Positions 42,346 through 64,000 of a DNA stretch of 64,000 nt are shown in pieces (the stretch's first letter is position 1; each line of letters begins with the position of its first letter). The notes under the pieces are model-generated. The model was not told the DNA's origin and made no database searches. It saw only the letters and a program-made list of their open reading frames with translations. Location of the stretch: contig JBLDXI010000033.1 in NCBI GenBank assembly GCA_047495785.1, forward strand, positions 806,001-870,000, given 5' to 3'. This stretch comes from Lepidodermella squamata (Eukaryota; Animalia; Gastrotricha). A program made the position numbers and the translations under genes.

Positions 42346-43041
42346 TCAGGCAGAACTGACCTCAACCCGAATGCTCTGTCCGGTTGGGACAATTTTTATC
42401 ACCGGAGGAATGTTGAACCGTTGGATCCGCCGCTCACGATTACGCTGCCAGCAATCCGCTAGATGATTCTTGTTAACGCAAATCGCTCGACAGCAGAAAA
42501 CGCCGCTGATGAAGAATAGGGCGATTCCAAATCCCATAAAACTCTCCCCTATCACAAGAGCCCGTTGAAACTGCATTACATCAATGTCGAGACGGGAGCC
42601 TTCGTCTTGCTGATATTCTTGGACTGCTTCACTGAAGTTGTAGCGGGTTTTTACGTTGATATGAATCGCCCACATGCCGAAACAGCTGATTGCGATGAAA
42701 ATCATCCCGAAGATCAACAAACAAGCATCCCCACCGTCGAATTTCGTACTGCTCCAGCTTTTTAAGGGCTTCCATCGTTCTTCGATGACAAATTGATAAG
42801 GCTCGTGGCATAGATCGCAGCAGGGTCGTCCTTGTGCGTTGAGCTTTAATGCAGTTGATATGGCTAGTTCAAGACAAGTTTTATGGGCATAACCGACAGA
42901 TCCTCGGCAAGAGCAGAACCCGGTATAGAGTGAGCTTTCCGGTTGGCTTGTAATCCCGCCTAAACAAATTCGGCATTGACTTTGGTCTTCGGAGTCCTGA
43001 GTTGGGAGATCATTTGACAAAACCTCTAGTGCTTGCGACAT
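42346..43041 (-). CDS. MARCH-like RING-CH, 2-TM protein (M1), intronless
   Basis: CRIC...CSCRGSVGYAHKTC...CDLC (C4HC3), WKPLKSW, two TMs, FNIPPV. Confidence 0.85.
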   Translation of the reverse strand: MSQALEVLSNDLPTQDSEDQSQCRICLGGITSQPESSLYTGFCSCRGSVGYAHKTCLELAISTALKLNAQGRPCCDLCHEPYQFVIEERWKPLKSWSSTKFDGGDACLLIFGMIFIAISCFGMWAIHINVKTRYNFSEAVQEYQQDEGSRLDIDVMQFQRALVIGESFMGFGIALFFISGVFCCRAICVNKNHLADCWQRNRERRIQRFNIPPVIKIVPTGQSIRVEVSSA

Positions 43042-43254
43042 GAAAGTTTTAAAGCCTGCAGCAGGATGAAAGCTGAATAAACCTATTACGTTCAAGTTAG
43101 CATTGAGGATTTTTTGCTTTCCTACTACATGGAAGAATTTTCTCGTGTTTGAAGGTGTTTAGCGTAGTTTTTTTTGCTTTTTCATCGAGATGATGCTAGA
43201 CATGGCAGTAATAGGGAAAACAAAAGAAATTAGTCATATTATTGGCAATTTTAT

Positions 43255-43878
43255 TCATGCAATCTCATTCTTATCAGACGATTTAAAATGAGTGATCTCT
43301 ATGGCTTGATTCATCCTGCAAAATTCTCCGATAAAATTCTTGGTAATGAAAATAGTATGAATGCAAAATAGGCCAATAGTTATGAAAATAGCTATGCTGA
43401 GGCCCATGAAACTTTCACAGACCTGCAGCGCGTAATTAAAATTCAAAAATTCGTCGTAGTCTTCCGATGATTGCTGATGCATCATAGCCAGTTGCCGCAT
43501 GAATCTCAATCGCGATTTTATGTGCAAATTCACGGACCAAATTCCGACTATGGCCAGGCCTATTACACCGAGTGAAAACAGGAACAGGCACATGTCGCCA
43601 CTTCCTAAATTCGGTACCACCCATTGCCGTAATGGCTTCCATCGCCATCTCACCTCGAATTGATAGGGCTGTTTGCAAATATCGCATATTAGTTCGGCAT
43701 CTGTTGTTTGACAGGTTGAAATAGCTCTTTCGAGACATGGTCGATGAGCAAAGCCGATGGAGCCTCGGCAAGAACAAAATCCAGTTTGTAAGGAGTAACC
43801 AGGCTGTTCTAACATTAAGCAAATTCTGCAGTGATTGTCCGACTCATTATCATGATACAAGTTTTGAGCTGAAATCAT
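43255..43878 (-). CDS. MARCH-like RING-CH, 2-TM protein (M2), intronless
   Basis: CRIC...CSCRGSIGFAHRPC...CDIC, WKPLRQW, two TMs. Confidence 0.85.
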   Translation of the reverse strand: MISAQNLYHDNESDNHCRICLMLEQPGYSLQTGFCSCRGSIGFAHRPCLERAISTCQTTDAELICDICKQPYQFEVRWRWKPLRQWVVPNLGSGDMCLFLFSLGVIGLAIVGIWSVNLHIKSRLRFMRQLAMMHQQSSEDYDEFLNFNYALQVCESFMGLSIAIFITIGLFCIHTIFITKNFIGEFCRMNQAIEITHFKSSDKNEIA

Positions 43879-44229
43879 GATATTTGTTGACAGAATGTTG
43901 AAAACTCAAGACTGGGCGACAAACTCGACAGACACAGCCCACTACATAGCATTCTCTGTTTTATATAGAAAAAATGACCACTTTTTTAGCGTTTACCTTG
44001 AGCACTTTTTCATTGACGATGGCAAAATGTACCGGGCTATAGCGCTAAGTAATGGTCAAATAAACGCATAAAAACTAACGTGAGGACCAGGTGCATAAAA
44101 ATGTGAAATTATATTATTGGGCAAAAATATCGCGCGTTATTGATATAAAATACCGCATAAATTATAATTTTTATTGCAAAAAACGTGTAAAAAATCATTT
44201 CATTATAATGAAAAATCACAAATTTTGCG

Positions 44230-45251
44230 ATGAAAATTGTTCATGTATTTGTTCTGGGATACTTCGTCATTCCGGGTAAATTCCTCATTTAAAAGAGATT
44301 TAATTTTAATTTTCTGGCTTTACAGCAGTTATCAAAGCATTTTGGTTCCTGAGGACGAGTCTCATCATGCAGGTTCAATTTGACAAAGCAAGTGGGATGA
44401 GAGACGCAATATGTGGGCTAAATCCGATCAATGTAAACAATAGAAGCCAAGTTTCAAAAGACCCTGGTCCGATGGGGAAGCGCGGGACGGCCTATATCAA
44501 CCCCGGCAGCTCAGCCGCACTGGGAACCTACCAATATCTACCGCTTCAAAGCGGCTTTTCGATATCAGTAATCTACAGCAGCTTCAGCCCATTGAGCGGC
44601 ATTCTCGACGTTGAATTCGACAACGCGTACTTATCCCTCTACATCGACACGGATAGAAACTTCGTTAAAACGGACACGTCCAGCTATTTGTGGCTGCAAT
44701 ACTGGTCGAAAAGAGGAGAGGGGAATTTCCTGACTGCGCAGACCTTCAAATTTGAGGAAGGTGATTTCACGCTGATAGTAATCACATATTCAAGAGAGGA
44801 TCAAAGGCTGCGAGCGTCGGTCTTCTCAGATTTTCGAAAAAATGATGATTATAAATCCATGTTTTTCGGCGGAATTGATTTCACGATTAATCCCGGTCAA
44901 ACCAAAGTGCCGATAACTGTTGGTAGAGCAGTTGTCCGCGGCATGCCACCGAATACATCTTACACGTATTACATGAATGAAGACGATGCGATTTCTTGTC
45001 TGGCAGTGTATGATGCGCCAATTGCGGATGAATTTATCAAGCAGATTCCTACTACGTGTGGAGAGGAGAAGCCACCGCCGAAATCGGTATCTAACTGCGA
45101 TAGGTTGCCGGCTAAAGTCATCACAACAACCCCGGTTCCGACAACGGTAACGCGCCGTGTTAACCCAGTTGAAACAATTAATAGTTCAGCAAGACTTACT
45201 GCTGGTCTTATTGAATTAATGATTATTTTTGCATTCATTCAAAACCTGTGA
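44230..45251 (+). CDS. Putative GPI-anchored LamG/concanavalin-like protein, exons 44230-44275, 44326-45251
   Basis: Upstream exon supplies a hydrophobic N-terminus in frame; GPMG...AY and ISCLAVYD resemble the LamG units of the mosaic lectin; Thr-rich stalk; C-terminal NSSA plus hydrophobic tail. Confidence 0.65.
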
Positions 45252-45387
45252 AAAAAAATCTTTAAACCTACATACTGCAATGAGTAAGTGGAACCGCTAA
45301 ATAAATTTTAATTCTATTTTCAATAATTAGCAGTTTTATCGTTGGAAATCATTTTTCTGTAATATGCAATATGCATTTTGGGAATGT

Positions 45388-46365
45388 TCACTCTAACAGG
45401 ATAACCAGGCATATCGCCCAAACAGCCAACAATGGGCTAACTGTGACTACTTCCGCTGAATTGATTGTTGTAAGCCGTGGAGTAATTCTTGTAGTTGTGT
45501 TAGAAGTGGTAGTGGTAGCATTTCGCGCAGTTTCAATGGTGTCCGCAATCCATTGAGTATAACTCGAAACACGAGTGAAGATACCGACCTTGAAAATGGT
45601 TGACAGGTCACATTTAATGCCGAGCGACACAATGCCATGCTGAGTAACTGTTCCATCAGCTGATTTATAGAAAAGTGGACCACCACTGTCACCGGGGCAA
45701 AATCGCTTCAATTCTGTGTCGTAGCCAGCACAAATCATCGACGACCCAACTTTAACTGGCTTTGGAACTCCGTTAACTAGAATTGTCACGTTCTCATACT
45801 CAGCTTCGCATTCATCATTACTCGCGATAGGCATGTCTGCCTTTCGAAGATACTGCGACGTTGCTGTCGAAGACGATTGATACATGCCCCATCCAGATAC
45901 TACTGCTACTTCGCCAGGATTCGGGTCATCCACTGGTAGCTTGATAGGTTGTATGGTGCTAGAAAACGTTATGTTTGTCTTCAGCTTGATCAAAGCAATG
46001 TCGTTTTCGTAGATGTTCGGTGAGTTGTATTTAGGGTGGATGAAGACTTCTTCCAAATAGACTGTCTCTTCACCTGTTTCGATTGCATATAAATCGTGTT
46101 TGCCGAGAAAAAACCTGAAGTCAGCCCACTGCCCTTCTTTGTACTCGGCGAAGCAGTGGCCGGCTGAAAGTAGCCACTGTTCGTTGATGATGCTCGCGCC
46201 ACAGATGTGCCGGGTTTTGAATTTGTGCGAGACCTGCCAGGGAAATTCGTGGGGTTCGGCGATGCTTCCGCCGATGACTCGGACTGAGTCTAAGGAATTG
46301 ACACAATTCCCGTAAATTGCTGAGGTCAGGGCGGCAGCGAGAGGAAGGAGGAAATAAATTCCCAT
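45388..46365 (-). CDS. S1A serine protease, GPI-type tail (P1), intronless
   Basis: R|VIGG, LSAGHC, NDIAL, GDSGGP; Thr-rich stalk and hydrophobic C-terminus. Confidence 0.92.
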   Translation of the reverse strand: MGIYFLLPLAAALTSAIYGNCVNSLDSVRVIGGSIAEPHEFPWQVSHKFKTRHICGASIINEQWLLSAGHCFAEYKEGQWADFRFFLGKHDLYAIETGEETVYLEEVFIHPKYNSPNIYENDIALIKLKTNITFSSTIQPIKLPVDDPNPGEVAVVSGWGMYQSSSTATSQYLRKADMPIASNDECEAEYENVTILVNGVPKPVKVGSSMICAGYDTELKRFCPGDSGGPLFYKSADGTVTQHGIVSLGIKCDLSTIFKVGIFTRVSSYTQWIADTIETARNATTTTSNTTTRITPRLTTINSAEVVTVSPLLAVWAICLVILLE

Positions 46366-46469
46366 TTTACCGGGTGCTAAAAGAAAGTTAAACTGGTAAT
46401 GGCTGTCAGAATGCATATAATGGCTCTTATACTTCTGCCCGCCCTGTTATATAGAGCAAAAATCCTTGT

Positions 46470-46660
46470 CGTGTGGTACTTTTTCAGAGTTATTTAAACA
46501 GAGACACTGCTAAAATGGATTACTAATCGCCTTTTCCTGGATGAAATCACCGTTTTTGTAAATAAAAGCCGTTCCTGATGATTAACGTAGTTCCCAAACT
46601 GCAGCTTTCTAATCAAATCGGTGGGGATAAGGTCTTATCTGTAACATGGGTTGATAATTG
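46470..46660 (-). promoter_or_regulatory. Conserved upstream block with paired GATA sites, shared with P2 upstream (~49300-49525)
   Basis: TGAAATCACCGTTTTTGTAAATA and GATAAGGTCTTATCTGTAACATGGGTTGATA are both conserved upstream of P2. Confidence 0.55.
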
Positions 46661-48269: not shown

Positions 48270-49190
48270 CTACCGAAATGTCGTGAAAATAGCCAGACAT
48301 ATCGGCAAAACAGCCAGGAATTTGCTAGTTGTAACTAATGTTGCTGAATTCATTGAATTCATTGTCGCCGTAATCCATTGAGTATACTTTGAAACACGAG
48401 TGAAAACACTGACTTTCAGCACTTTGGAGTTTTCGCAAATAGCTCCCCAAGATACAACGCCATGTTGGGTGATGTTACCATCGGCTGATTTGTAAATCAG
48501 CGGACCACCACTGTCACCGGGGCAGAATCGCTTTTCGAGATTAGAGTAACCAGCGCAAATCATGGTCGGCACAACTTTCACTGGCTTCGCAGTGCCGTCA
48601 ACCCTGATTAACATCCCATCGTACTCCTTGCCGCATTCTTCATTAGTCGCTACTGGCAGGTCAACCTTTCGGAGGAGAAGCGATCCAGCTTTTGAGCCCG
48701 GTATATACCTGCCCCATCCTGAAACTGTCGTCATTTCGTCAGGCTCCGGGTCGAAATCTGGCAGGCTTATCGGCTGAATTGTATCCGAAAACGTTATATT
48801 CCTCGTCAATTTGACCAGGGCAATGTCGTTTTCGAAGGGGTTCGGGGAGCTGTATTTCGGGTGAACAACTACTCTCTCCATTTTGTAAGTAGCCTGGCCA
48901 GCCTCGGTTTTCGTCAAGTCGTGTTTGCCGAGTACAAATTCGAACTCTTTCCAGTCTTTCTCTTCGAGCTCTTTGAAGCAGTGGCCGGCCGAGAGGAGCC
49001 ATCGCTCGTTGATTATGCTGCCACCGCAAACATTTTGGTCCCTGAACTGATGAGACACCTGCCACGGGAACTCGTGGGGAGTTGCAAGAGTTCCACCTAC
49101 GATTCGGAGATCGACACAGTTCCCGTAAATTGCCAAGGACAGCGTTGCAGCGAGTGGAAGTAGGACATGAGTTCCCATTGCACCGAGCAT
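48270..49190 (-). CDS. S1A serine protease, GPI-type tail (P2), intronless
   Basis: R|IVGG, LSAGHC, NDIAL, GDSGGP; MNSA plus hydrophobic tail. Confidence 0.92.
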   Translation of the reverse strand: MLGAMGTHVLLPLAATLSLAIYGNCVDLRIVGGTLATPHEFPWQVSHQFRDQNVCGGSIINERWLLSAGHCFKELEEKDWKEFEFVLGKHDLTKTEAGQATYKMERVVVHPKYSSPNPFENDIALVKLTRNITFSDTIQPISLPDFDPEPDEMTTVSGWGRYIPGSKAGSLLLRKVDLPVATNEECGKEYDGMLIRVDGTAKPVKVVPTMICAGYSNLEKRFCPGDSGGPLIYKSADGNITQHGVVSWGAICENSKVLKVSVFTRVSKYTQWITATMNSMNSATLVTTSKFLAVLPICLAIFTTFR

Positions 49191-49816
49191 TAAAGCGATA
49201 CCAAATTAATGATGTCTGTCTAGGGGATGTCTGGCTTATAAGCCCGTAGTCCACCCTGATAAAAAAAGTCCAATCACGATAACTATAACACTGTTGTACG
49301 TTTTTTTCAGATTTATTTAGATAACCACAGCTTAATGATGTATTAATCAGAACGACTAGTCGCACGTTTCTGGTGAAATCACCGTTTTGTAAATACAAGC
49401 CACTCCTGATTCACGTTTCTTTTACAATAACTGTATAGTAGCATTTTAATCAGTCTCATTAATGCAGTTTTTTTTATCAAATCCGGGGTGATAAGGTCAT
49501 ATCTGTATCATGGGATGATAGTTGTCGAATGATTTCATGGAAAACTAATTAGGTACAGTAAAAGTGCATTCCCAGCTTTTGCCGACTGAACAATTTTCCG
49601 GGGGGAGATTCTGGCAATCCTATTTTTAACCAACTCATGAAATCCTCATGAAAGGAAGAGTGGTTCAAAGCTCCCAAAGTGAAATGCGCGAATTCTGTTG
49701 CCCTGAGCTTGAAGTGTTACCAGGAAATAAGGAACTTTTTTTAGTTATTTAGCTGAGGCAGCCCGAGTAAGGAACCAGGTATGCCGTAGTAGGAAACCCG
49801 GGAAATTTTCACATCT

Positions 49817-50011
49817 TTAGCGACGCGCCAAAACAACCACTTTGATGACTCATTCGATCGTACTTTGACGAGCCGAGCGTAAAGAAGGAGTACGTTCGGC
49901 TTTTTGAGCACTGATCGTACTCATCGTAATTTGAATTTACGTTCAACAGTCGAACGTACTTTCCATAAAAAAGCTATAAATAGTAAAGTGGTTGTTTTGG
50001 CGCGTCGCTAA
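49817..50011. mobile_element. Small foldback/MITE-like element
   Basis: Perfect 27-bp inverted repeat TTAGCGACGCGCCAAAACAACCACTTT / AAAGTGGTTGTTTTGGCGCGTCGCTAA. Confidence 0.65.
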
Positions 50012-50255: not shown

Positions 50256-51170
50256 TCAGATATTGGTGAGAGTAGCCAAGCTCGCCAGGAGGACGGCGAA
50301 GAATGTGTTGATTCCAAAAGCTGACGCCGAGTTCATAGTAATAGTATCCTGTATCCACTGGGTATACTTTGAAACACGCGTGAAGACACTGACCTTGAAC
50401 ATGGTCGCCAAATCACACCTTATGCCAAGCGACACAATTCCATGCTGAGTAACTGTTCCATCAGCTGATTTATAGAAAAGTGGACCACCACTGTCACCGG
50501 GGCAAAATCGCTTCAATTCTGTGTCGTAGCCAGCACAAATCATCGACGACCCAACTATAACTGGCTTCGGAACTCCGTCAACAGGAATCAACACGCCTTT
50601 ATATTCGGCTTCGCATTCGTCGTTTGTCGCGATAGGCATATCAGCCTTTCGAAGATACCGTGACGTTGCTGTCGAAGACGATTGGTACATGCCCCATCCG
50701 GATACTATTGCTATTTCGCCAGGATTCGGGTCTTCCACTGGTAGCTTGATAGGTTGTATGGTGCTAGAAAACGTTATATTTCTCTTCAACTTGATCAAAG
50801 AAATGTCGTTTTCGTAAGGGTTGGGCGAGTTGTATTTAGGGTGGACAAAGACTTCATCCATGTAGACTGTCTGTTGGCCTGCTTCGTAAGTACTTAGATC
50901 GTGCTTGCCGAGAACAAAACTGAAGTCAGCCCACAGCCTTTTGTCAACCTCAGCGAAACAGTGGCCAGCTGAAAGCAGCCACTGTTCGTTGATGATGCTC
51001 GCCCCGCAGATGTGCTGGCCGTTGTATTGATGGGAGACTTGCCATGGGAATTCGTGGGGATCTGCGATGTTTCCGCCGATGATTCGAACCGAATCCAATG
51101 GATCGGTGCAAAAGCTAACGGCGGCAAATGTGGAGATTAACAAAAACAGAGTAAACCAAGATTTTGCCAT
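50256..51170 (-). CDS. S1A serine protease, GPI-type tail (P3), intronless
   Basis: R|IIGG, LSAGHC, NDISL, GDSGGP; MNSASA plus hydrophobic tail. Confidence 0.92.
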   Translation of the reverse strand: MAKSWFTLFLLISTFAAVSFCTDPLDSVRIIGGNIADPHEFPWQVSHQYNGQHICGASIINEQWLLSAGHCFAEVDKRLWADFSFVLGKHDLSTYEAGQQTVYMDEVFVHPKYNSPNPYENDISLIKLKRNITFSSTIQPIKLPVEDPNPGEIAIVSGWGMYQSSSTATSRYLRKADMPIATNDECEAEYKGVLIPVDGVPKPVIVGSSMICAGYDTELKRFCPGDSGGPLFYKSADGTVTQHGIVSLGIRCDLATMFKVSVFTRVSKYTQWIQDTITMNSASAFGINTFFAVLLASLATLTNI

Positions 51171-51461: not shown

Positions 51462-52118
51462 TCACATATCATCACATAGCCTGGTAACCGGCGGAATCTT
51501 GAAAGTTAATGATAAATGACTGTCTTTGAAATTGAGTTCAATAATTTTCTCCTTGGCCCAGGAATATGCCTTCGAATAATAAGTAAGAATCAAAATGAAG
51601 CCAACAACCGTTAGCGGAAGAATCGCGCCTGAGTAATAGATAAATTTGCCAATTCCATCCCGATCATTTGGCGATGTTGTTGTAGACGAATTCTTCGGGG
51701 CGGCTGTCGTCATCGGAAAGTAACCAGTTTGGCCTTTCTCGTTCATCAAAGTATTCCAAGCATCGGCAAGTATGCCAGACGATATACCAGCCCAAACTTG
51801 GAAAATCAAATAACCAATATAGATAACGAGTCCAGCAGTAAATAGGCAAAACCAGACGAATCCTTTTGGGTAAATCCATTGCGAAATCGGTTTTCGGCTG
51901 ACTTTCGTCGTGATTTCAAACGCCTTGCCGCAAATTTCGCAAATAGGTTTATTCGAAGAGTTCATCCTCACTGCTGGGGAATTTATCAGCTGCTCGAGGC
52001 AGAATTTATGGAAATTCCCCATTGTGCCACTGCAGGAACAGACATTGCTGAATAGCGGCTCGCTTGTTGGACCGTCGCAGCAAATTCGACAGGTTGGTAA
52101 TTCTGCTTCTAAAGTCAT
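51462..52118 (-). CDS. MARCH-like RING-CH, 2-TM protein (M3)
   Basis: CRIC...CSCSGTMGNFHKFC...CEIC, KPISQW, two TMs, FKIPPV. Confidence 0.85.
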   Translation of the reverse strand: MTLEAELPTCRICCDGPTSEPLFSNVCSCSGTMGNFHKFCLEQLINSPAVRMNSSNKPICEICGKAFEITTKVSRKPISQWIYPKGFVWFCLFTAGLVIYIGYLIFQVWAGISSGILADAWNTLMNEKGQTGYFPMTTAAPKNSSTTTSPNDRDGIGKFIYYSGAILPLTVVGFILILTYYSKAYSWAKEKIIELNFKDSHLSLTFKIPPVTRLCDDM

Positions 52119-52267
52119 TAAAACAGGTTCAAAAAATGTTTTTTGGGATGGGCTGATGTTTTGCTCTTGAGTTCGAGAATTAGGATTTTATCTCTTCCGC
52201 TATTATTATCATCTGCCCTTATCTCTTGGCTGCTGAAACTAAACTCAAATTGCTCGACAAAGGGCAT

Positions 52268-52930
52268 TTATTTTTCAATTATGCAAACCGGAGGCATGCG
52301 GAAGCGAATGATTTTGATTTCACAGTTAAGCTCTATCAACTCCTTAGTGTAAGTCTTCCTGACATCTCGCAGCAAAATAAGGCCTAGGACGAAGAAAAAC
52401 ACGGCGAAAAGGAACGTTATCGGAAGCGCGGAGCCAATGAGAGTCAGTAAAAAGTCACTCGACCAGTCAGTATCGTCGTAGAAAAGCACCTCATCTGATG
52501 CCGAGATGATGGTTTGATTAGCTGATATCACCGTAGAATTATTGCCAAAATCTCGTATCTGCCTGAGCTCGAAAACAGCCCAAATTTGAACTCCAACAAT
52601 GCAGAGGAGGAGGAAGCATAGAACAAAAGAAACAGGTAGAAAACAGCTGGCGTTGTCGGGCAGTGACCAAGACCAAATCGGTTTCAGATGTTTAACGCAG
52701 TGAATTTCTAATTTTTTCAGGCATATATCACAGGCCGGCTGGCCGTCTTCCGTCATTCTCGCCGATGGTAGTGAGATTTGCTTTTCGAGGCATTGTTGAT
52801 GCGTGAAGGCGATTGATCCCCGGCATGAGCAGACGTTGGTGTAAAGCGGCCCCTTCGCCTCGCCTGGGCCTTCGAAGCATATGCGGCAGCTATTTAGCGG
52901 CGATTCTAGTACTTCTAAACAGTGGGCCAT
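52268..52930 (-). CDS. MARCH-like RING-CH, 2-TM protein (M4)
   Basis: CRIC...CSCRGSIAFTHQQC...CDIC, two TMs, FRMPPV. Confidence 0.85.
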   Translation of the reverse strand: MAHCLEVLESPLNSCRICFEGPGEAKGPLYTNVCSCRGSIAFTHQQCLEKQISLPSARMTEDGQPACDICLKKLEIHCVKHLKPIWSWSLPDNASCFLPVSFVLCFLLLCIVGVQIWAVFELRQIRDFGNNSTVISANQTIISASDEVLFYDDTDWSSDFLLTLIGSALPITFLFAVFFFVLGLILLRDVRKTYTKELIELNCEIKIIRFRMPPVCIIEK

Positions 52931-53143
52931 TTTGGTTATTGTTGTAAGAAAAATACTGGCAGTGAAAAATAACGGCCTTATCTATTTCTTATCATCATCC
53001 TTTTGTGTTTTATTATTCTGCATTTCGTGAGTGCAAATTATTATTCATTCAGCTTTCAGCCGCGCGTTTTCCCCATTCGCGGCATAACTCAATTTTCGAT
53101 ACAAAAAACAAAAATCGATAATCTTTTCATTACGTCTCATGCA

Positions 53144-55408
53144 TTAGTGACGGAAAATGAGATGGTTGCAATTTTGCGGTAAAATCATCGCTGATTTGTT
53201 ATGACAATCGAAAATTTTGCTGAAATCAGCTGAATTTGACAAAATCCTGTTAACTCGACTCGGAGGCTCGGAGTGAGCCCGTAATATGTCCCAATTAAAG
53301 ACAGGTTTATGAGCTGCACAATTCCATTGAGCATACGCGAGATAGAAAAGATGTTTCCCTTGATCCGTGACACTATTCAGTAATCTGGAGGCTGTTTCTA
53401 ATCCTAAAGAATCTGCATAATCCTCCAGTAATCTCGGATTTTCTCGATGATAGAAAGTTTCCTCGGAGCTGGTATCGATTTCTGTTGTTGATAAGCAGTT
53501 TATGTAGCTTTTGATTTGCTCCATTTTAAGTTCTTGGCTCAAAACATGAGCAAGCTCATGGCCGACAATCGTACCGATTCTTCCATATTTAACCGCCAAT
53601 GGGTAGGATTTATCGAAAAAAGGCTCGTGCAACATCGGCATATTGACTCGAATCAAATTCGTTAATCTGTTGTAGTTAGCTCCGAATTCGAAAGCTGACT
53701 CGTGGAAAATTTGGTCGATATCCTCCAGCGAGACGCCTTGAGTCACGAAACCAAGCATCATTTTCGTTTTAAATTTGTAAGCGCTTCGCAGGTTTTTAAG
53801 GTGGCTTGACCGCGTGACAGTAAAAGACTCATAAAATTTGTCAAGATGCGCCTCATTCAGTGTCCAAGACGGTGTTCCAGCTTGAAATCTGACCCGGCGT
53901 AACGTCTTTGCAGTTTCTTCGGGAATTTGAAGCCGCGCAGCTAAATGTTTGAATTCATTCAAAAATTTACTGTAAATTCGATGAAAATCCTCAAGATTCG
54001 ATGTTGTAACAAATTTCCTCCTGTAAATTGAAGAGACAGCTAACGGCATGGTCTGAGAAATTAGCCTTAAACACTCCAATTCAGCCATTTTAGTTTCGCC
54101 CTCGAGTATTGATCGAAGAGGGTAGAGAGCTTTAAGGACGAGGTAATTCTGCAGCATTTGTCGACCATTCTGAGTTTCGACCTAGGTAGACCTAGGTCCT
54201 ACTCAAAATCAAGCTTGATTTTGAGTAGGTCGCAAACCCTTTTCAAATAGTAGCACCTATCGTCGCTAATGTAAATCGATTGAAGAGGAATAGAAAGGCT
54301 GAGATGGGCGGTCCAAGCCTTGAAGAACGACTCCCAATTGAGTAAATTGCAACATGAAGTCAAGTTAAGGATAGGAAGTTCAACCAAGGAAGTATCTAGA
54401 ATAAGTCTCTCCGGGACATGAATAGACGCGAGTTGTAGTTCGAAGTACACAACTTCATCAGCTTCCGGCCTTGAAATTCCTCCGAAAGGTCTCGCCAAAG
54501 CGAAAATCTCACGGCTATACATGGCGATTTTGAATGGAGTTACGCCAGATTTAGTCATGGAAAAGTGATCGAAACCTCCTTTCTGAATGACAAGAACTGG
54601 CTTGGCTTCATTTGGGTCTTTAAATTGAAAGGTCAGGTGAAATAAATGATTCCTGCTGTAGTGCATCAGCTTTCCAATGCGTTCGAATAAATCGCTTTGC
54701 TTCACATCGACTTTGGCTAGCCCGCCCATTTTTTCGACGATTGTTCTTAGCAAATGCCTATTCTGGATGAACAAGCTGTTATGGCGACAGGCGTCGTAGT
54801 AGTCCTTGACCTTTTTCTCCGATTTCCACACAAAATTCGAGGCATTTTCTAAAATTAAATATGGGCAAATTGAAGGAAAAAAATATTAAAAAATCCAACT
54901 TAATAATTTGATGAAAGCAATTTTCGCGGATTGAGTCAAATCTGATGCGATTGAACGACCTAGTTTGCTGCCCTCATCACTTGAACAGTAGCTCCCACAT
55001 GCGTATTGATAGAAATCTTCGCAAGGATCTACTGTGTTGTCGACGATGTCGAACATCGCTTCGATGGATTTGTTGCACTGATCCGACTTACATATCGTCG
55101 TAAAATTGCTGAGTTTCGGATAAAAATCCGGCGGCACGAATATTTTAATCGGGAAATTCGACTCGAAAGTCACTACAACAGCAACTAGAAGGGCTAAAAC
55201 CACGGTAACAACAACGGCGCCTGAAATTCGCAAGATTTATTTGATTTTTATTTTAAAATTTAAAATTACGTGTGCAGTGCTTAGTTCCAGATTTTTCGTG
55301 ATCTGGATTGTCTAGCCTAGCGTAAGTTGTGTCGACAGAATTATCGTTAGGATCAAGTCTGTTTCTACCGCGACCTTGCAGTCTTGCGATTCGATATCTG
55401 CGAGGCAT
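53144..55408 (-). CDS. Neprilysin/ECE-like M13 metallopeptidase, type II membrane (possibly disrupted at ~54.2 kb)
   Basis: Cytosolic N-terminus plus TM, VDPCEDFYQYACG, GHELAH (HExxH), EDYAD, HSEPPSRV; introns 55221-55269 and ~54849-54899; junction at 54182-54237 is ambiguous. Confidence 0.8.
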
Positions 55409-55608
55409 TTTCTTACGTGTAAAAATAGCGATTATAACAGATACCTTCGAATAAATCGCTATCTTTTGTTTATCAGACGATAATTTGTTATTTTTACGAT
55501 AAATCTCCAGATCGCGCGGGAAATATTTTATTGATAAAATCGCCCTCAATCAGGAAAAAATACATCATATAAATTATTAGGCATTTTGAGTCACATTTAG
55601 GTTTTTTC

Positions 55609-56516
55609 TCACAAACGGGTGAGGCCACCATCAACGGGTAAAACGACCCCGGTAAGGTAGGAAGCATCATCGCTTAAAAGAAACAGGGTGGCCGAGACAA
55701 CGTCACTCGTTTCTGAAAACCGGCCCAGGGGCGTTCGGCCAAGCATCGGGCCTGATTTAGCCGGGTCAGACCAAACTGCTCGGCCCATGTCAGTCAGCAC
55801 AACAGTTGGATTTACGCTGTTGACCCGGATATTGTGAGGGCCGAGTTCAAGGGTCATAACCCCCATCATAGCATCCATGGCGCCCTTTGAGGAGCAGTAG
55901 ACAGTATGGTCACGTAGCGGGCGGATGGAAGCAATTGATGATATGTTGACGATTGAACCAGGCTGGCCACGTTTCTTCAAATCATTAGCGATGACCTAGA
56001 TTTTTTAATTTTATTACTATGTGTGCGTGCTGCAAAATAAATTCAACTGACCTGAGTAATATTCAACGTGGCTTTGACATTAATTGAAAATAGGTCATCG
56101 AAATCAGACTCAACGTACTCGCCAAATGGTTTTGTCAGAGCAACACCTAAGATTAATAAATAATTGGGCATTTTTTTAGAAATAACGTCGGAAAATATCC
56201 AACCAGCATTGTTAACTAGAAGATCGATTGGGAGAACTGATTTAATTGCCTCTTCCGTCGCCTTCCAGTCTGCCACATCCACGCAAAGAGTGGTGCTGTT
56301 TGGAAGCTAATTTTATTTGAATTTAATTGAAAAATTGGGCAATATTCTCTTAATCATAGTTACCTCTTTTGCCGCTGCTTCCAAGTTCGCTTTGCTCTTA
56401 CCAACAATAATGACATGGGCGCCTTCTTTATGTAGACCTTTTGCAATGTCTAGGCCAATACCACGCGATCCCCCAGTCACTAGGGCTCGTTTACCCTGGA
56501 ACCTGTTTGTTGCCAT
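55609..56516 (-). CDS. DCXR: L-xylulose/dicarbonyl reductase-like SDR, 4 exons
   Basis: [65 protein letters not shown]. Confidence 0.85.
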
Positions 56517-56709
56517 TCTGAATTGAATGAGTCAAAGCCAAGTTTCAGAAAGCCTTAATTCTAGAAACTGCATGCAGCCCTTAATACTGGAGACTGATAA
56601 AAAACGCGCTAGTACCGAGGTAATATTTAGATAAAAAATAGGGAGTGAAACAAATGATATGATATTCAGCAGGTTTTATTCAAATGCGTGTTTAATTAAA
56701 ATGAAAAAA

Positions 56710-57498
56710 TTAAACATTCAAAGCTTCAGCGTTATCATCCGTGCCAACTACAGCGGATGATGTCTCTTGACCGCTAAATTTTTGCACAGGTGGTGAAATG
56801 AATTTAACAACTCGACATTCAGTATTCAAGTCGATAAGCGTTCGCCAAATTTCTTTCCGGTTCGAACAAGCTTTCATGCCAGCGTAGAACATGCCGAAAG
56901 CCAGGAAAAGAACAGTAACGGGTAGAATAGCCGCGGACATGGTTGCGAATACGTACATTTCCGCCGAGACATTCCAACCGTATTTAACTGTAGTTCTTAT
57001 TGGCTTGGGGGTCGTTGTCTTCATCGCCGTGTAGGCCGTAGTTTCGGCGGTTTCGGGTCGCTGTGTTGTTGTCTGAGCCGAGGTTATAGGTATCCAATCC
57101 ATGTTAGTCTCAATTTCAGTACCCCAAGCAAAGAAACCGGTCAAAATTATGAGAATGCAGTATATCAAAATTATCATTTTCGACTTCCTATCAGGTCGAG
57201 GTAGTCGCCACCTCCAAAACGGTCGAACCCTCCGCTGTTGGTCAACCTGGTAAACCTGCTTGCATAAATCACATTTCGGCTTGCCATTTGCGTCCAATTT
57301 AGTCGCGTCAGCTTTAAGGAGAAGTTCCAGGCAATGTTTATGGATGTAGCCAACAGATCCTCGGCATCCGCAGAATCCAGTGTAGATTGGTAAAGGTCTA
57401 CGCTTGAATAAGCATACTTTTTCGGTGTAACTTAGGCCTTCCAAACAGATTCTACAAGTGATCTCCTCAGGCATCAGATCGAAATTGTTGCTACTCAT
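56710..57498 (-). CDS. MARCH-like RING-CH, 2-TM protein (M5), Thr-rich luminal loop
   Basis: CRIC...CGCRGSVGYIHKHC...CDLC, two TMs flanking a mucin-like loop, FISPPV. Confidence 0.85.
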   Translation of the reverse strand: MSSNNFDLMPEEITCRICLEGLSYTEKVCLFKRRPLPIYTGFCGCRGSVGYIHKHCLELLLKADATKLDANGKPKCDLCKQVYQVDQQRRVRPFWRWRLPRPDRKSKMIILIYCILIILTGFFAWGTEIETNMDWIPITSAQTTTQRPETAETTAYTAMKTTTPKPIRTTVKYGWNVSAEMYVFATMSAAILPVTVLFLAFGMFYAGMKACSNRKEIWRTLIDLNTECRVVKFISPPVQKFSGQETSSAVVGTDDNAEALNV

Positions 57499-58006
57499 CA
57501 GCTGGGAAGGAAAAGCTGGAGAAAAAGGACAATTTCCTGACTGATAAATGAGCTTTAGATAAAAGTAACAAAAGTAAATGCACTCTTATCTTATGGCGTT
57601 TTATCCAAGAACAAACTCATCACGAGATGGATGATATTTAGTCCATCGAGCTCGGTTCATTGGGCAACCTTTTTGTTGTGTATAAGGAATTCGAAAAAAT
57701 TACAGATTGGGAAAGCTCGCTCATGTTAAGTTTTATTTGAATTATCTCTCTGCAAATATTTAGGTGATTGAGCTCGAACGTGGAAAAATCAGAAAACCAA
57801 GCGAAATTGCCCTTTTCAGGCGCCCAGCGCTTCACATGAAATAAACATCACTAAAAAAAAAAATGAGCGGCAGTGTTTTGAATTGAGCTTTCTGAATCTG
57901 TAAATTTTCGAAATTTCCTATAAAAAAAAATTAGCCAAGAAAACTGACTTTCTCTGCGGCGTGATAAAAATAGAAATAATCTTATTTAGTTATTTATTAT
58001 ATTTTA

Positions 58007-58414
58007 CGAAGTGCACTTTCATACATATTTATGTATGAAATTTTTAACTTTCATACATATTTATTTATGACAAAATTAACTTTCATACATATTTTTTTCA
58101 TAAAATCGTGTTTTTCAGCCAAACTGTGATTAGGAATTGGGGTTAGGGTTAGGTTTAGGGTTTGGTTAGGGTTCAGGATTAAGGTTAGGGTTAGGAAATT
58201 TCGAGTTTCGGGGTTCTACCTAGCTCGATTTTTGGGCCCTTGCGCTTCCCAATAACCAATTTCATGCGGAAAAAATTGACTACGCTTTCGGAACCCCGTT
58301 TTTCTTTTTCATAAACCGAAAACAAGTCATCTGGCATTTCCCTAAATTTAATGAGAAAAAATATGTATGAAAGTTAAAAATGTCATACATATTTATGTAT
58401 GAAAATTGGCACCC
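58007..58414. mobile_element. MITE with 9-bp TSD and internal degenerate TTAGGG array
   Basis: TATATTTTA at 57998-58006 and 58415-58423; TIRs built from repeated TTTCATACATAT...ATGTATGA units. Confidence 0.75.
58129..58195 (+). repeat. Degenerate telomere-type (TTAGGG)n
   Basis: GGTTAGGGTTAGGTTTAGGGTTTGGTTAGGGTTCAGGATTAAGGTTAGGGTTAGG. Confidence 0.8.
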
Positions 58415-59029
58415 TATATTTTATTTTAATATGGGTCAAAACGTCGTCACCTGTTTTCTAATAAATAAATTATTATCGGAATAGTTGGGCCAAGAGGACG
58501 ATTAGGGCATCGTGTCGTAGGTCAACGTGTCGTTGGGTCAAAATGTTGTATTCTTGGTTAAATATTGTCTAAATGAGAATTTGGTGAATCAATTTCGCCT
58601 GTGGAATAATGAAACGCGTTATCTCTCTTCCAGCTATGTTTTTTTCCAAAATATTCCAAAAGAAATTTCGCGAATTTGGCTTGAATAAGGGAAGTTGAAT
58701 TATTAAATTTGTACCTTTTTGATAGTAACAGCCAGGTAAAAGTTCGCCAAGACCTGAATACCTTATACTGAAAATCATGGAGAATTTCTATATCTTCATT
58801 ATCTTCATTATCTTCATTATCTATATTTACTATTTGTTTGGATTTTTCGTAAATGATTTTTCCGCATTTTTTAAATATTATTTCGCACCTTCGAAGAATT
58901 CTTTTTTATTTTCAAGCCATATAGAAAAAATTGCGTTATATTTCAAGCCTGTTGGCCGAGGCTATCATTTTATTAGTAGGTTATTTTTTAGCTATATTAA
59001 TTAATTATAAAAAATGCAATATACTAATA

Positions 59030-59812
59030 TCAAACAATGAATATTTTCAATTGGTTTTTGCGAAGCATAGACGGCTCGATTTTCACAACTGGCGGCATTT
59101 TGAAATCAATTGTTTCCCAGTCCGTCTTCAACTCAATAAAGCCATCTTTAACTTTGAGAAATTTGAGGATAAGCGCCACAAAACAACCAAGGATGAACAT
59201 TAACGAGACTGGAAGAAAGCCGATTGACAAAGCCGCTAATACCCTATCGCCATCAGAATAATTCCAAGCGTAGTAATACCCTTGTGTTGTGTGGACGGGC
59301 TTTGGCATCCGAGTTGTAGTCGATGGGAATAAGGTCCATTTTGTTTCGGCTGTAATATCTACTTTCGTGCTAGTTGTAACATTATTATTTGCCGTAGTAG
59401 TTATATAGTAATGCTTTTCCAATTCCAGGGTATCTTCAACGTAAGCACCGTAGGAGAAAATAGCAGTACAAATGATGGATAAGACCAGAATGACGTAGAA
59501 CGTATTGCTCATCCTTAGTTTTTCCCAGTGCCAAATTTTTACCTTTTTCGATCGATAATCCACCTGATACTTGGTCCTGCATAGCTCGCAAATTGGGTTG
59601 CCGGTGATGTCTCGTTTCGTATATTCGGATTTCAGCGTCAGCTCGAAGCAATGCTTGTGAATGAATCCCATTGTTCCGCGACATGCACAAAACCCGGTGT
59701 ACATAGGCTGAGGTTGTTCGGAGAAGAACTTCCATCGCGATGAAGAATTCAAGTCGTCTTGGCAGATTCGACAAGTGACATCTTCTTGGTCTAGGTAATC
59801 ATGGCTGCTCAT
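59030..59812 (-). CDS. MARCH-like RING-CH, 2-TM protein (M6)
   Basis: MSSHDYLD start shared with M7; C4HC3 RING; Thr-rich loop; FKMPPV. Confidence 0.85.
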   Translation of the reverse strand: MSSHDYLDQEDVTCRICQDDLNSSSRWKFFSEQPQPMYTGFCACRGTMGFIHKHCFELTLKSEYTKRDITGNPICELCRTKYQVDYRSKKVKIWHWEKLRMSNTFYVILVLSIICTAIFSYGAYVEDTLELEKHYYITTTANNNVTTSTKVDITAETKWTLFPSTTTRMPKPVHTTQGYYYAWNYSDGDRVLAALSIGFLPVSLMFILGCFVALILKFLKVKDGFIELKTDWETIDFKMPPVVKIEPSMLRKNQLKIFIV

Positions 59813-60900
59813 ACCCTGAAAGATGATATATCGCTGTAGTAATTTCAAGATCAAACAAGTAGATGCTGATTAAAATTGCTGCGGAGTGCTCAATTTATAC
59901 GTCCTCGATATGAATAACCAGCATTTGCATGAATCAGTGTCAAACCACACGATAAGTTCGAATGATAATGGAATTGATAAGACAAAGATGTCAAAGTCTG
60001 AAAGAAGAGGTAAAATTAGGACAAACCTCTTTCTCAATGGTCTCAATGGTCAAGCTCACCTAGAGTTGGCAAAATTTCCCAACACTGGCTAATAGCATAC
60101 CTCAACGGCCATTGGGCATTATTTTGAAAATATCAAATTTATTATGAAAATGTTGATGCCAAAGTAGGGCTCACAAGAATACTGAACACGGTAATGTGGG
60201 GTAATTGTAAAAGGGGGCAAATTGGAACTAATTTTTCAGAGTCGAAAATTGATAATAGATTTTTCCATTGCATTCTTTCTCTTTTTCGTCAGCTTTTGAA
60301 TGGTCAAAAATATGTATCAATAGAAATATTATGGAATTCCGGCGGGAAACTCGTTTGAATTTCTGAATTTATTTAAGGGAAAGCTAATATTTTTGCCCTT
60401 CCAAAAAAATAAAAATTTGATAAAAATTTGAATATTTCTGCGAATTACTAAGGAAAAAAAATAAAAATGAACTATTTTCAAGCTTCTATCACGTATATGC
60501 AGCGTGTCCCATCATAAGTAACGCGAGCAAAGAAAATACGCGGAAAAAGGTTCGGTAACTCTTAAATGCGAGACGAAGTCACATCTCATGGCCAAAATAA
60601 AGTTAGAAAAATTCAAATTATCACGAGAATATTAGGGTATTCGAGTATAGCACTTGTTACCGGGATAAAAGAATGTTAATTCCGGAGAAATGTGTTGCAA
60701 TTGGGTAAAATACCGAAAATTACCGAACCAGCTATCATCGGGGTTTTACGGGTGTTTGTTCGATAAACTTGTTACATCGCGGATAACAGATGGAATATTC
60801 TCTCGGTAGTTTAATTGAAAAAAATTAGTTGGATCTGCCGCACAAATTTGCTAAATTTAAAAATAGTTGCGCAACTACTGGGGCGCGCTGAATAGATGAA

Positions 60901-61352
60901 TACCGTATTTAACGAATTATTAGGCAGGACCCAAATATAGGGCAGAACCGGAATAAAGGGCAGAGGGTAACGGTCATTTGAAATAATAAAGGGCAGAACC
61001 GTATTAATAGACAGGGCCTTGTATGAAGTGGCTTACATGAGCGCCTGCTGGGTAAGTGGCTAAAGTTGGATAGGTCGCGATTTTTCGTCAGTAAGTGCAC
61101 TAATCGTCCTTTATCCACCTTAATCCACTTGGGCAAACACTTCACGCGTGTAGTCACAGGTGGAAGGCAGTAGCTTCAGTGGCTATTCGGCGGTTTTATC
61201 TAGGTTGATCTAGGTATTTTCAGCTGACTGATTAGGTTCGAAAAATTAAAGGGCAGAACCGAAATAAAGTGCAGACCCTAAATACAGGGCAGGACTTGAA
61301 CCTCGTTTGAAAAAAATACAGGGCAGGGTCTTATAATTCGTAAAATACGGTA
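60901..61352. mobile_element. Tc1/mariner-pogo-type MITE (TA TSD)
   Basis: TACCGTATTTAACGAATTAT / ATAATTCGTAAAATACGGTA inverted termini; repeated subterminal AGGGCAG units. Confidence 0.8.
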
Positions 61353-61471
61353 AGTTAATGGTTTTTCCATGATAAATAAATTAAATAAATTAGAATGGAG
61401 TGGAAGATTCGAGAAATTCATGCAACGATCAAGAATGGGCTTTTATTACGTTATTAAACAAATTAAAATTA

Positions 61472-62251
61472 TTAAACAGTAAAAACTTTGATTTTATTCT
61501 TCCCAAGCATAGATCGTTTGACTATCACAACAGGTGGCATGTTGAATTCGATGATTTTGCATTCAGAGCTCAACTTTGATTTCCACCTAGCTTCACTGAC
61601 GTCGACGTAAATTTTCAACAAGCAGCCCAGAATACAAAGCAGCGTCAACGGCAACGCGCCGATTGATAAGGAAGCAAAAAGCATAGCATCATCAGAATAA
61701 TTCCACTCGTAATGATAACCTTGATCTTTACTTGTTGTTGACCGAGTTTTCGGCGTCGTGGTTGATCGAGCTTGAACTGATTCAAAAGGCAGAGTCGTCA
61801 AAACAACTTCCGTTGAAACAGTTAAAGGCTGAGCTGGGGTTGTATTGTTAACCTTTACAAGTTCAAGCGTCGCATAAATGTATACTCCATAAGAAAATAT
61901 CAAGCTGAAAATGATCAAAACAGCTAGCATCAGTAGAGTCCATTTCCCGATGACGCTAAACGGGGATCGCCACATCCGTTTTCGCACCGTCTTATACTTG
62001 ACCTCATACTTCGTTTTACAAATATCGCATATGGGATTTCCAAGGCTGTCTCGTTTTGTCACCTCAGCTCCAATAGTCTGTTGCAAGCAGTGTTTATGGA
62101 TATACCCCACAGTTCCGCGGCAAGCGCAGAAGCCTGAGTACAGAGGATCGGGCTGTGTTACAAAGCAGAGCCATTTGTTCGACGCTTTCAACCCTTCCAA
62201 ACAGATGCGGCAGGTGATTTCATCGATGTCTAAATAATCATGGCTGCTCAT
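61472..62251 (-). CDS. MARCH-like RING-CH, 2-TM protein (M7)
   Basis: Close paralog of M6; C4HC3 RING, Thr-rich loop, FNMPPV. Confidence 0.85.
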   Translation of the reverse strand: MSSHDYLDIDEITCRICLEGLKASNKWLCFVTQPDPLYSGFCACRGTVGYIHKHCLQQTIGAEVTKRDSLGNPICDICKTKYEVKYKTVRKRMWRSPFSVIGKWTLLMLAVLIIFSLIFSYGVYIYATLELVKVNNTTPAQPLTVSTEVVLTTLPFESVQARSTTTPKTRSTTSKDQGYHYEWNYSDDAMLFASLSIGALPLTLLCILGCLLKIYVDVSEARWKSKLSSECKIIEFNMPPVVIVKRSMLGKNKIKVFTV

Positions 62252-62424
62252 GATAAAGATGAACCATAAACAATTTTTGGGCAATAGAAAGCTGGGTCAT
62301 TATAAATATTCCGTGGCCTCTCCTGAGTTGTTAAAAACACAGATAAGTTCGCATGATAAGACTAAGCCTGGCAACACAAGTGAAAAAGATAACCTCTCGA
62401 GGCATTGTTATCTATTAATTTACT

Positions 62425-63132
62425 TCAATAGGTAACATGAATCACAAGGCTGCTGAGGTTTTCATCTATTTGAGGTTCATCCTTTTTGCCGTCGTCTACA
62501 TTGGAACTTATGCAGCTCGTGATTCTGATTTCACAATTTAAACGGCGAAATTCGTTCCACCACCACCTCCGAGAGGCTATTGCCGTGAGAATTAGCATGA
62601 AAATGCAATAAAGGGAGGCTGGTACTGTGACGAAGACTGTAACAAAAGCTTGAAACATGAAGAAAAGATTCGAAATATCAAGGGGGCGAATCTCCCGAAG
62701 AGAATGAGATCGTTGGCTTGCATGATCAAAACTTGTTTCATTGTGTCCATAGTTGTCGGCTGCAGTGGAAATGTCCCATTTCGCGACAACCAATATCCAA
62801 ATTTGAGCGGCGGAAACTAGGAGAAGAATTGTCAAAATTGCGAAAATCCTAACGTGTCTCATGTCAATTCTCGGCAAGGACCATTCGCGTACGGATTTGA
62901 AGCACTTGTCGATTTTAACTCGATATGGCTGCTTGCATAACTCGCAATGCGGCAGGCCAATGTAATCGAAAGTCTTAGCAGTGAAGGCAGCATTAGAGAT
63001 GACCATTTCCAAACATTGCCGGTGGGCAAAACCAATCGAACCTCGACAGCCACAGAATTCTGTGCAAAGCGGGCCTTTCGCCTTCTCATGGCCACTCAAG
63101 CAAATTCGGCAGCATTCCGACTGCATGTCCAA
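62425..63132 (-). CDS. MARCH-like RING-CH, 2-TM protein (M8)
   Basis: CRIC...CGCRGSIGFAHRQC...CELC, two TMs. Confidence 0.85.
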   Translation of the reverse strand: MDMQSECCRICLSGHEKAKGPLCTEFCGCRGSIGFAHRQCLEMVISNAAFTAKTFDYIGLPHCELCKQPYRVKIDKCFKSVREWSLPRIDMRHVRIFAILTILLLVSAAQIWILVVAKWDISTAADNYGHNETSFDHASQRSHSLREIRPLDISNLFFMFQAFVTVFVTVPASLYCIFMLILTAIASRRWWWNEFRRLNCEIRITSCISSNVDDGKKDEPQIDENLSSLVIHVTY

Positions 63133-63328
63133 GTTAGCCTATCAACGCGATAAAAAGCTGTTTTGCACTAGAGAGAGGGAGAATGGTATGGCACGTGTGG
63201 GTGATACTAACTATTGATGCCTCCCACCTATGGCGTATTTACATACACCAATTCGATTCCGCTCATTAACGATTCATGTGCAAAAAAAACGATACCGAAA
63301 TGCATTGTTTTATTGACATGCTTTCCAA

Positions 63329-64000
63329 TCAAAATTTTGAAAGGCTTTCGCGCTTTTGACGAATTTCTATAACCGGGGGCGATTTGAACCTCAGTTGTGA
63401 CTTTTCGTGATTTCCTTCCCAGAATAACAGCAACCACTGCCTGTTCTCCCTCCCTACCACGAGAACAAGTCCGAGAAATAGAAACAGCAAGATTGATACG
63501 TAAAGTGAATAGCTCATCATTTCCAGAAAAACAAGCATAGAATCACTGTAGCTCGAAGAGTTCTGCCGAGATAACACCGGATTCGTAACATTGGTATCGG
63601 ATTGCTGCAGAACAGTTGAATTGATGTTGCGATTGGCATTGATTCGTTCAAAATTCGCCCATAAACCGACTGCAACGAAAGCAGCAGTGACTAGAAAGCT
63701 GACCAGCAAAAACCGGCAGAACTTGTGAAGTTTTGGAACTTGCCACAGCCAAACAGGTTTCAGCGATTTTTTAACATGAATTTGGAACCGTTGTTTGCAA
63801 ATTTCACAGCACGGCTTCTTCTTGTTATCGAGCTTGACTGAGCCAGACGTTAGAACCAGCGTTTCCAGGCAGGTTTTATGGATGTGGCCAATCGATCCTC
63901 GGCATGAGCAAAATTTGGCGTAAAGAGGGCCTGAACTATCGTCGTCTTCGCAACCGCTTAAACAAATTCTGCATCTAACCGTGGTTTGAAAACTGTCGGC
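63329..64000 (-). CDS. MARCH-like RING-CH, 2-TM protein (M9), 5' end outside the window
   Basis: Open frame from the window edge: ...VRCRICLSG...CSCRGSIGHIHKTC...CEIC...KPVWLW, two TMs, FKSPPV. Confidence 0.85.
   Translation of the reverse strand, partial: ADSFQTTVRCRICLSGCEDDDSSGPLYAKFCSCRGSIGHIHKTCLETLVLTSGSVKLDNKKKPCCEICKQRFQIHVKKSLKPVWLWQVPKLHKFCRFLLVSFLVTAAFVAVGLWANFERINANRNINSTVLQQSDTNVTNPVLSRQNSSSYSDSMLVFLEMMSYSLYVSILLFLFLGLVLVVGRENRQWLLLFWEGNHEKSQLRFKSPPVIEIRQKRESLSKF

Follow-up and report, generated by a model that had tools for sequence, protein, structure and literature searches.

An array of nine RING-CH genes at one locus

We analysed a stretch of 64,000 nucleotides (nt) from the gastrotrich Lepidodermella squamata (GenBank assembly GCA_047495785.1, contig JBLDXI010000033.1, positions 806,001 to 870,000 of the forward strand), hereafter the window, with positions counted from its first letter. 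An earlier note on this DNA had described nine MARCH-type RING-CH genes on one strand. Exactly nine were likewise found in the window when its open reading frames (ORFs) were listed and when the family profile was run over all six frames with hmmsearch; every one is on the minus strand and occupies a single uninterrupted ORF. The array is an expanded family of MARCH-type RING-CH membrane proteins without the tryptophan that contacts the ubiquitin-conjugating enzyme (E2).

The copies are named c1 to c9 by position, with coordinates and lengths counted from the first ATG. Both c1 (42346-43041, 231 amino acids (aa)) and c2 (43255-43878, 207 aa) carry Ala at the Trp site (CLELA and CLERA, respectively). 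The c1 protein consists of a RING-CH domain and two transmembrane (TM) segments with a C-terminal FNIPPV; c2, whose stop codon lies 160 nt upstream of the listed ORF start of c1, has lost the PPV motif (FKSSDK). The next pair comprises c3 (51462-52118, 218 aa), with Leu at the site (CLEQL) and FKIPPV, and c4 (52268-52930, 220 aa), with Gln (CLEKQ) and FRMPPV. They are followed by c5 (56710-57498, 262 aa), which has Leu (CLELL) and FISPPV. Thr occupies the site in c6 (59030-59812, 260 aa; CFELT, FKMPPV) and in c7 (61472-62251, 259 aa; CLQQT, FNMPPV), both of which are transcribed, and c7 is the closest paralogue of c6 (46% identity). The PPV motif is lost again in c8 (62425-63126, 233 aa), where the site is Val (CLEMV). 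The transcribed copy c9 (63329-64000) has Leu (CLETL) and FKSPPV and is at least 223 aa long, the window edge cutting its N-terminus.

Intact zinc sites and a replaced tryptophan

The Pfam RINGv model (PF12906), whose gathering cut-off is 21.6 bits, scored 27.2-38.1 bits in all nine copies, with c4 the best at 38.1 bits. Invariant columns of the nine-copy alignment are the eight zinc (Zn) ligands (C, C, C, C, H, C, C, C), a single Gly and the R-I of C-R-I-C. Compared with solved RING-CH domains, the nine-copy profile matched Doa10 (2m6m, E 1.3e-11), c-MIR/MARCH8 (2d8s, E 2.2e-8) and KSHV (Kaposi's sarcoma-associated herpesvirus) K3 (1vyx, E 1.9e-3). The Trp of Doa10 CLLEW, of c-MIR/MARCH8 CLQQW and of K3 CLSTW, the last being W41 when counted in chain 1vyx, aligns with the fourth residue after the Cys, and at this position c1 to c9 read A, A, L, Q, L, T, T, V and L. 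The five-letter readings of the CLxxW segment in the earlier note are identical to those in this alignment, and its statements that every copy keeps all eight Zn ligands and that F-x-x-PPV occurs in seven of the nine copies, c2 and c8 lacking it, also stand.

Around the replaced residue, the pattern of Leu at +1, Glu at +2 and I/L/V at +5 stayed fixed. Trp is present at the CLxxW position in 100 of the 123 other aligned relatives. Three further residues of the RING stand at positions that face the E2~ubiquitin conjugate in RING complexes, a role known from RING-E2 structures such as c-Cbl-UbcH7. Two of them, the Ile of CRIC and an I/L two residues after Cys7, are kept in all nine copies, and the third, a K/R/H after Cys8 (the linchpin), in seven. 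These are the same frequencies as in the 100 Trp-bearing relatives, and those in the 23 other Trp-less relatives are similar. The family also has RING changes of its own: the Pro before Cys3 is replaced by F or V together with a one-residue insertion, and the loop from the helix to Cys7 is longer and carries a conserved P-x-C.

It had also been stated that this Trp contacts the E2 and that its mutation inactivates the protein. The literature agrees for three RING-CH ligases: with Ala in place of the Trp of CLxxW, K3 no longer binds the E2, and MARCH9 and MARCH8 lose their function (PMC3206601, PMC2722766, PMC8292393, PMC11049619).

Membrane architecture and the PPV motif

Hydropathy marks two TM-like hydrophobic segments in each copy. 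The loop between them bears N-x-S/T sites; it has three in c4, which carries one more just before TM1, and is long and Thr/Pro-rich in c5-c7. An AlphaFold2 (AF2) model of c1, based on a 134-sequence alignment, reached a mean predicted local distance difference test score (pLDDT) of 83.4 and shows a RING, a post-RING strand, a long helical hairpin (helices 103-144 and 152-189) and C-terminal strands. Its nearest ESM Atlas cluster is 'E3 ubiquitin-protein ligase MARCHF8' (template-modelling score 0.54 by query, 173 residues aligned, residues 12-214), both sides of this match being predictions. Foldseek against the PDB returned weak matches to RING domains alone, Doa10 and c-MIR first (best E 2.4e-3), and no solved full-length MARCH protein was among them.

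Flanking the hairpin, the pre-TM1 Trp of KPxxxW is found in all nine copies and in 64 of the 123 other aligned relatives, and the post-TM2 Trp, Asn and Pro columns (W..N....P) are common to the copies and the Trp-bearing relatives. In the column of the first Pro of F-x-x-PPV, 33 relatives have a residue, and in 30 of them it is Pro. Because this column is the conserved post-TM2 Pro of Trp-bearing MARCH-like proteins, the alignment indicates that F-x-x-PPV is no new module but the form that a conserved MARCH juxtamembrane element after TM2 takes in this family. No YxxPhi motif was read from the alignment in the short C-terminal tails of the nine copies.

Expression and constraint

Coverage by the complementary DNA (cDNA) run X1 was looked at within 58001-64000, the region of c6-c9. 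There, X1 contigs lie on the ORFs of c6 (58971-59707), c7 (61450-62171) and c9 (about 63298 to 63922; contigs cover 63415-63922 and depth starts from about 63298), as well as on two high-copy repeats, and none lies on unique intergenic DNA or on c8. These contigs are colinear with the genome, so c6, c7 and c9 are without introns. The earlier description of the genes as intronless is thus confirmed for these three copies, and for the other six it follows only from uninterrupted ORFs that span the whole domain architecture.

The loose ends of X1 contigs carry an adaptor that we take to be the SMART template-switch adaptor. A cDNA adaptor joint falls at 63298, 31 nt past the c9 stop codon and just beyond an AATAAA. 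Copies c1, c2, c5, c6 and c7 have the same signal 0-60 nt past their stop codons, and in c2 it overlaps or directly follows the stop codon. The 3' untranslated regions are very short, and same-strand neighbours are only 140-200 nt apart. Given the AATAAA positions and the adaptor joint, copies at this spacing look like separate, very compact transcription units. A search of eight upstream regions found no motif common to all copies; an AGATAAG (GATA-like) heptamer occurs in three of the eight, upstream of c3 (about 52119-52320), c4 (about 52931-53130) and c5 (about 57499-57700).

In pairwise comparison, the paralogues differ at a proportion of 0.69-0.90 of synonymous sites (pS), saturated in nearly all pairs, and 0.33-0.58 of non-synonymous sites (pN), with an amino-acid identity of 19-46%. 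The synonymous rate (dS) is saturated in most pairs, which leaves no meaningful pairwise ratio of non-synonymous to synonymous rates (dN/dS), and only pN < pS and ORF integrity are usable. All nine frames and all Zn ligands are intact despite this saturated synonymous divergence. Among the variants in two runs, 20 are synonymous and 10 non-synonymous. Six synonymous and four non-synonymous variants fall in c7. For c8, a contig of a second allele or strain in run X2 differs at 14 sites, nine of them synonymous (9 to 5), and no Zn ligand is hit.

Evolution of the tryptophan loss

A profile scan of 1.84 billion representative proteins returned 5756 RING-CH matches and a single close full-length relative, P0001 (E 7e-32), which is encoded on a eukaryotic metagenome contig, has the PPV motif and reads CLELTW. 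A word-indexed homologue search with c4 produced 198 candidates, none of them significant and none a self-match, and an exact-sequence contig look-up gave no match; the genome's own proteins are therefore absent from those collections.

In a tree of the RING-to-TM1 region (77 columns), whose support is modest, the nine copies form one clade (Shimodaira-Hasegawa-like approximate likelihood ratio test (SH-aLRT) 87). This clade is nested in a group (SH-aLRT 89) with P0001, P0096 (CIERYW), P0007 (Met at the site), P0150 (Ser) and P0028, which has a canonical CLQRWI. The contig of P0028, from the same sample as P0001, bears two tandem RINGv genes, both with the Trp and with the hallmark LYxFCxC[RK]GSxG. 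Because the nine copies form one clade, their Trp loss is best read as one inherited event and not as nine coincidences, and because environmental relatives with the same hallmark keep CLxRWI, the family would have begun with Trp. The tree and the alignment thus indicate a lineage-specific family that started with the Trp and a window branch from which it disappeared a single time, ahead of that branch's expansion. The site then went through several further changes, giving A/A in c1-c2, T/T in c6-c7 and L versus Q in c3-c4.

In P0001 (CLELTW) and P0096 (CIERYW) the Trp stands one residue later. These two proteins prompted a 'shifted Trp' register, in which the I/L/V at +5 would be the true Trp equivalent. 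It was rejected as unsupported: I/L/V at +5 is a feature of canonical MARCH proteins as well, and no gap is needed to align the nine copies. The nearest relatives lie on the environmental eukaryotic contigs L010:3265-5324, L001:2544-3287 and L012:2663-3403 (ENA samples ERZ27333047 and ERZ23486787; GC content 0.38-0.40), and on L010 two tandem intronless RINGv genes with the canonical Trp adjoin an arrestin-like gene.

Among the 134 aligned relatives, 34 have no Trp at the site, and the tree requires at least 11 state changes there. The top 150 matches contain 129 RING-CH domains with the Trp and 25 without, a list biased toward Trp-less proteins by a query profile that itself has no Trp. Trp-less relatives include proteins of the tick Amblyomma americanum (KAK8786441) and of Tetrahymena utriculariae (KAL4490366). 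The Tetrahymena protein belongs to a separate, mostly environmental Trp-less clade of 11 members (SH-aLRT 97) of the CLKK[QASL] type (P0005, P0006, P0016, P0019, P0033, P0042-P0044, P0067, P0086 and P0121; L002, L003). The other members of this clade are found on metagenome and Logan contigs, with Skp1, WD40 and HSF genes among their neighbours. Loss of the Trp is not unique to this genome: about one-fifth of the nearest RING-CH proteins elsewhere, in ticks and a ciliate clade, are without it. Six metagenome RING-CH genes chosen by patterns that ignore the Trp site all have the Trp; these are distant (27-37% identity, RING-only alignment). Judged by these alignments, Trp remains the rule among RING-CH proteins. 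A literature search for RING-CH proteins naturally without the Trp, for MARCH proteins that are pseudo-ligases or for MARCH expansions in invertebrates found nothing relevant.

Genomic context

The array is interleaved with ordinary animal genes for trypsin-like proteins, an M13 peptidase and a short-chain dehydrogenase (SDR), with lectin genes upstream. Three tandem intronless trypsin-family genes on the minus strand (45388-46416, 48270-49190 and 50256-51170; Pfam Trypsin E 3e-57 for the first) sit between the pairs c1-c2 and c3-c4. Each ends in a hydrophobic C-terminal segment that could be a membrane or glycosylphosphatidylinositol (GPI) anchor, and their closest database matches, which come from fish, insects, crustaceans and ticks, share just 30-40% identity. 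The M13 (neprilysin-like) peptidase gene (53144-55233, minus strand) consists of at least three ORF pieces with gaps of about 41-54 nt, and the SDR gene (55609-56516, minus strand) of four pieces; their tiny introns (about 40-55 nt) contrast with the intronless RING-CH and trypsin genes.

On the plus strand, a two-gene lectin module is duplicated in tandem (32719-35756 and 39017-41975), a Laminin_G_3 (concanavalin A-like) ORF being followed by one with F5/8 type C and SUEL (rhamnose-binding) lectin domains. The sole plus-strand gene inside the array (44367-45251) is a 294-aa ORF without a Pfam match, which has a Thr/Pro-rich stretch and a hydrophobic C-terminus. High-copy dispersed repeats occupy 58001-58400 in the c5/c6 gap and 60600-61400 in the c6/c7 gap and also occur in the cDNA run; in the DNA run, contigs reach a depth over them that exceeds that of unique flanking DNA by a factor of tens to about two hundred, and alternative joints are numerous. 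Base composition is uniform across the window, and a search of the whole window with Rfam gave no matches.

Interpretation of the Trp-less family

We slightly prefer the reading that these proteins are still RING-dependent with a weakened or altered E2 contact over a non-catalytic role as adaptor, regulator or decoy, and we hold it tentatively, at a little less than an even chance. The nine would be old paralogues forming one lineage-specific branch of the MARCH1/8-type family. Each would have a cytosolic N-terminal RING-CH domain, the KPxxxW segment, a two-helix TM hairpin with a variable, sequon-bearing loop, and a short cytosolic tail with W..N....F..PPV. The Trp would have been lost before the tandem expansion, after which the site varied freely between A, L, Q, T and V, the remainder of the RING staying under selection. 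Like MARCH proteins, they may then still regulate other membrane proteins in a RING-dependent way, with partner recognition through the TM hairpin, loop and tail. The E2 would be engaged through the retained contacts, namely the CRIC Ile, the I/L two residues after Cys7 and, in most copies, the basic linchpin after Cys8. This contact might be weaker than the canonical one or involve another E2, perhaps one anchored in the membrane, and it could differ between the aliphatic (L/V) and the small or polar (A/T/Q) paralogues.

Our slight preference stems from the other E2-facing residues having been kept and from L or V standing at the Trp site in four of the nine copies. Many active RINGs outside the CH type have Leu, Ile or Val at the equivalent position, and other Trp-less RING-CH lineages persist with intact RINGs. 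Several points weigh against RING-dependent activity. The Ala of c1 and c2 is the same substitution as in the ligase-dead or E2-binding-dead mutants of K3, MARCH9 and MARCH8 (PMC3206601, PMC2722766, PMC8292393). The site varies from hydrophobic to polar, with no conserved substitute for the Trp, and the conserved remainder of the RING surface could be kept for folding or for a partner other than an E2, and not for catalysis. In addition, c8 has no coverage in the one cDNA run, which was viewed for c6-c9.

The alternative that survives best, a serious possibility but one we rate below RING-dependent activity, is that the copies are natural pseudo-ligases. The RING-CH would then be a folded module that no longer recruits an E2, and the proteins would work without ubiquitin transfer, as adaptors that hold back or redirect partner membrane proteins, as decoys, or as regulators or dominant-negative partners that oligomerise with Trp-bearing MARCH proteins. 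The residue lost is the very one that, when mutated, leaves three studied RING-CH ligases without E2 binding or activity; two copies carry the Ala of the dead mutants and three a polar T or Q, the site evolving freely. Such roles have precedents: MARCH8 has a tyrosine-motif-dependent mode of action beside its ligase mode, MARCH1, MARCH8 and MARCH9 oligomerise, and BARD1, BMI1 and MDMX are established RING pseudo-partners. The wider family includes Trp-bearing relatives, so Trp-bearing partners could exist in this genome. However, the short tails of the copies have no YxxPhi motif, the non-zinc E2-facing residues (CRIC Ile, I/L after Cys7 and linchpin) are as conserved as in Trp-bearing proteins, and four copies have the L or V used at that position by many active RINGs. 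In its fullest form, the array would be a whole maintained and expressed 'pseudo-MARCH' family that gave up E2 recruitment, its members serving as adaptors, retention factors or antagonists of Trp-bearing MARCH proteins for lineage-specific surface receptors, with independent parallels in ticks and ciliates; we regard this as possible but rather doubtful.

That the copies are decaying or functionless duplicates, the dead leftover of a tandem duplication, is very improbable, even with the PPV motif lost in c2 and c8 and no cDNA coverage of c8. Nine ORFs and all Zn ligands are intact at saturated synonymous divergence, the variants show a 2:1 synonymous excess, c8 included, and c6, c7 and c9 are transcribed, with poly(A) signals present. 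Expression, intact ORFs and the variant ratio therefore exclude pseudogene decay for the family as a whole, and the data contradict it. Least plausible of all is an insertion of virus- or transposon-derived RING-CH genes, comparable to the herpesvirus and poxvirus K3/MIR genes, into the host genome: although the genes are intronless, compact and tandem and viral RING-CH proteins share the layout of a RING and two TM segments, the base composition matches the surroundings, the adjacent trypsin genes equally have no introns, and ordinary animal genes, some of them with introns of about 40-55 nt, lie between the copies. Neither terminal repeats nor viral genes were seen, cellular MARCHF8 gives the nearest fold, and the paralogue divergence is ancient.

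Implications

The RING-helix Trp is held to be indispensable in the MARCH and K3 literature, where the Ala mutant is the universal ligase-dead control. The naturally Trp-less, expanded MARCH1/8-like clade described here is a natural experiment on the RING-CH/E2 interface, in that it lost the Trp, expanded, stayed expressed and for a long time under purifying selection, and now has five different residues at the site. As ligases, the proteins would reveal how a RING-CH domain recruits an E2 in the absence of the Trp, with the paralogues as a ready-made series for mapping the interface. As non-ligases, they would represent the first natural pseudo-MARCH family and would suggest that the fold has jobs independent of ubiquitin. 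The recurring loss of the Trp in ticks and ciliates means that domain-based annotation of RING-CH proteins as 'E3 ligase' needs care.

Comparison with known systems

In BARD1, BMI1 and MDMX the RING fold retains its zinc sites, yet it does not bind an E2 productively by itself, as would hold for the window proteins if they are pseudo-ligases. Unlike the copies, these are soluble C3HC4 RINGs that act through RING-RING heterodimers, and we know of no RING-RING dimer for RING-CH domains. Doa10/MARCH6 gives the best PDB sequence match (2m6m, E 1.3e-11), which includes the long loop from the helix to Cys7. In contrast to the copies, Doa10 is a 14-TM ligase of the endoplasmic reticulum (ER) with the Trp, and the RING domain alone is shared.

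KSHV K3 and K5 and other viral RING-CH proteins (MIR) resemble the window proteins in being small, with a RING-CH domain and two TM segments, and in having intronless genes. It was in K3 that the Trp was shown to have a role in binding the E2 (PMC3206601). The Trp is still present in the viral proteins (W41 in K3), whereas the window copies are cellular, ancient and tandem and lie in an ordinary animal gene context. The other natural Trp-less RING-CH proteins (KAK8786441, KAL4490366 and the 11-member clade) have A, Q, S, L, M, F, Y, T or C at the site and, like the copies, keep all Zn ligands and the CRIC Ile. Theirs are independent losses, and they are without the hallmark LYxxFCxCRGSxG and F-x-x-PPV.

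MARCH1 and MARCH8 (c-MIR) share with the copies the N-terminal C4HC3 RING-CH domain, KPxxxW before TM1, the two-helix TM hairpin and the post-TM2 W..N....P. MARCH8 is also the best whole-protein fold match, and its RING (c-MIR, 2d8s) is matched by the family profile. In contrast to MARCH1 and MARCH8, all nine copies have replaced the Trp of CLxxW, and they have F or V for the Pro before Cys3 together with an insertion and a longer helix-to-Cys7 loop with P-x-C. Their ecto-loop is longer and variable and bears N-x-S/T sequons, and their tails are very short, with F-x-x-PPV but without a YxxPhi motif.

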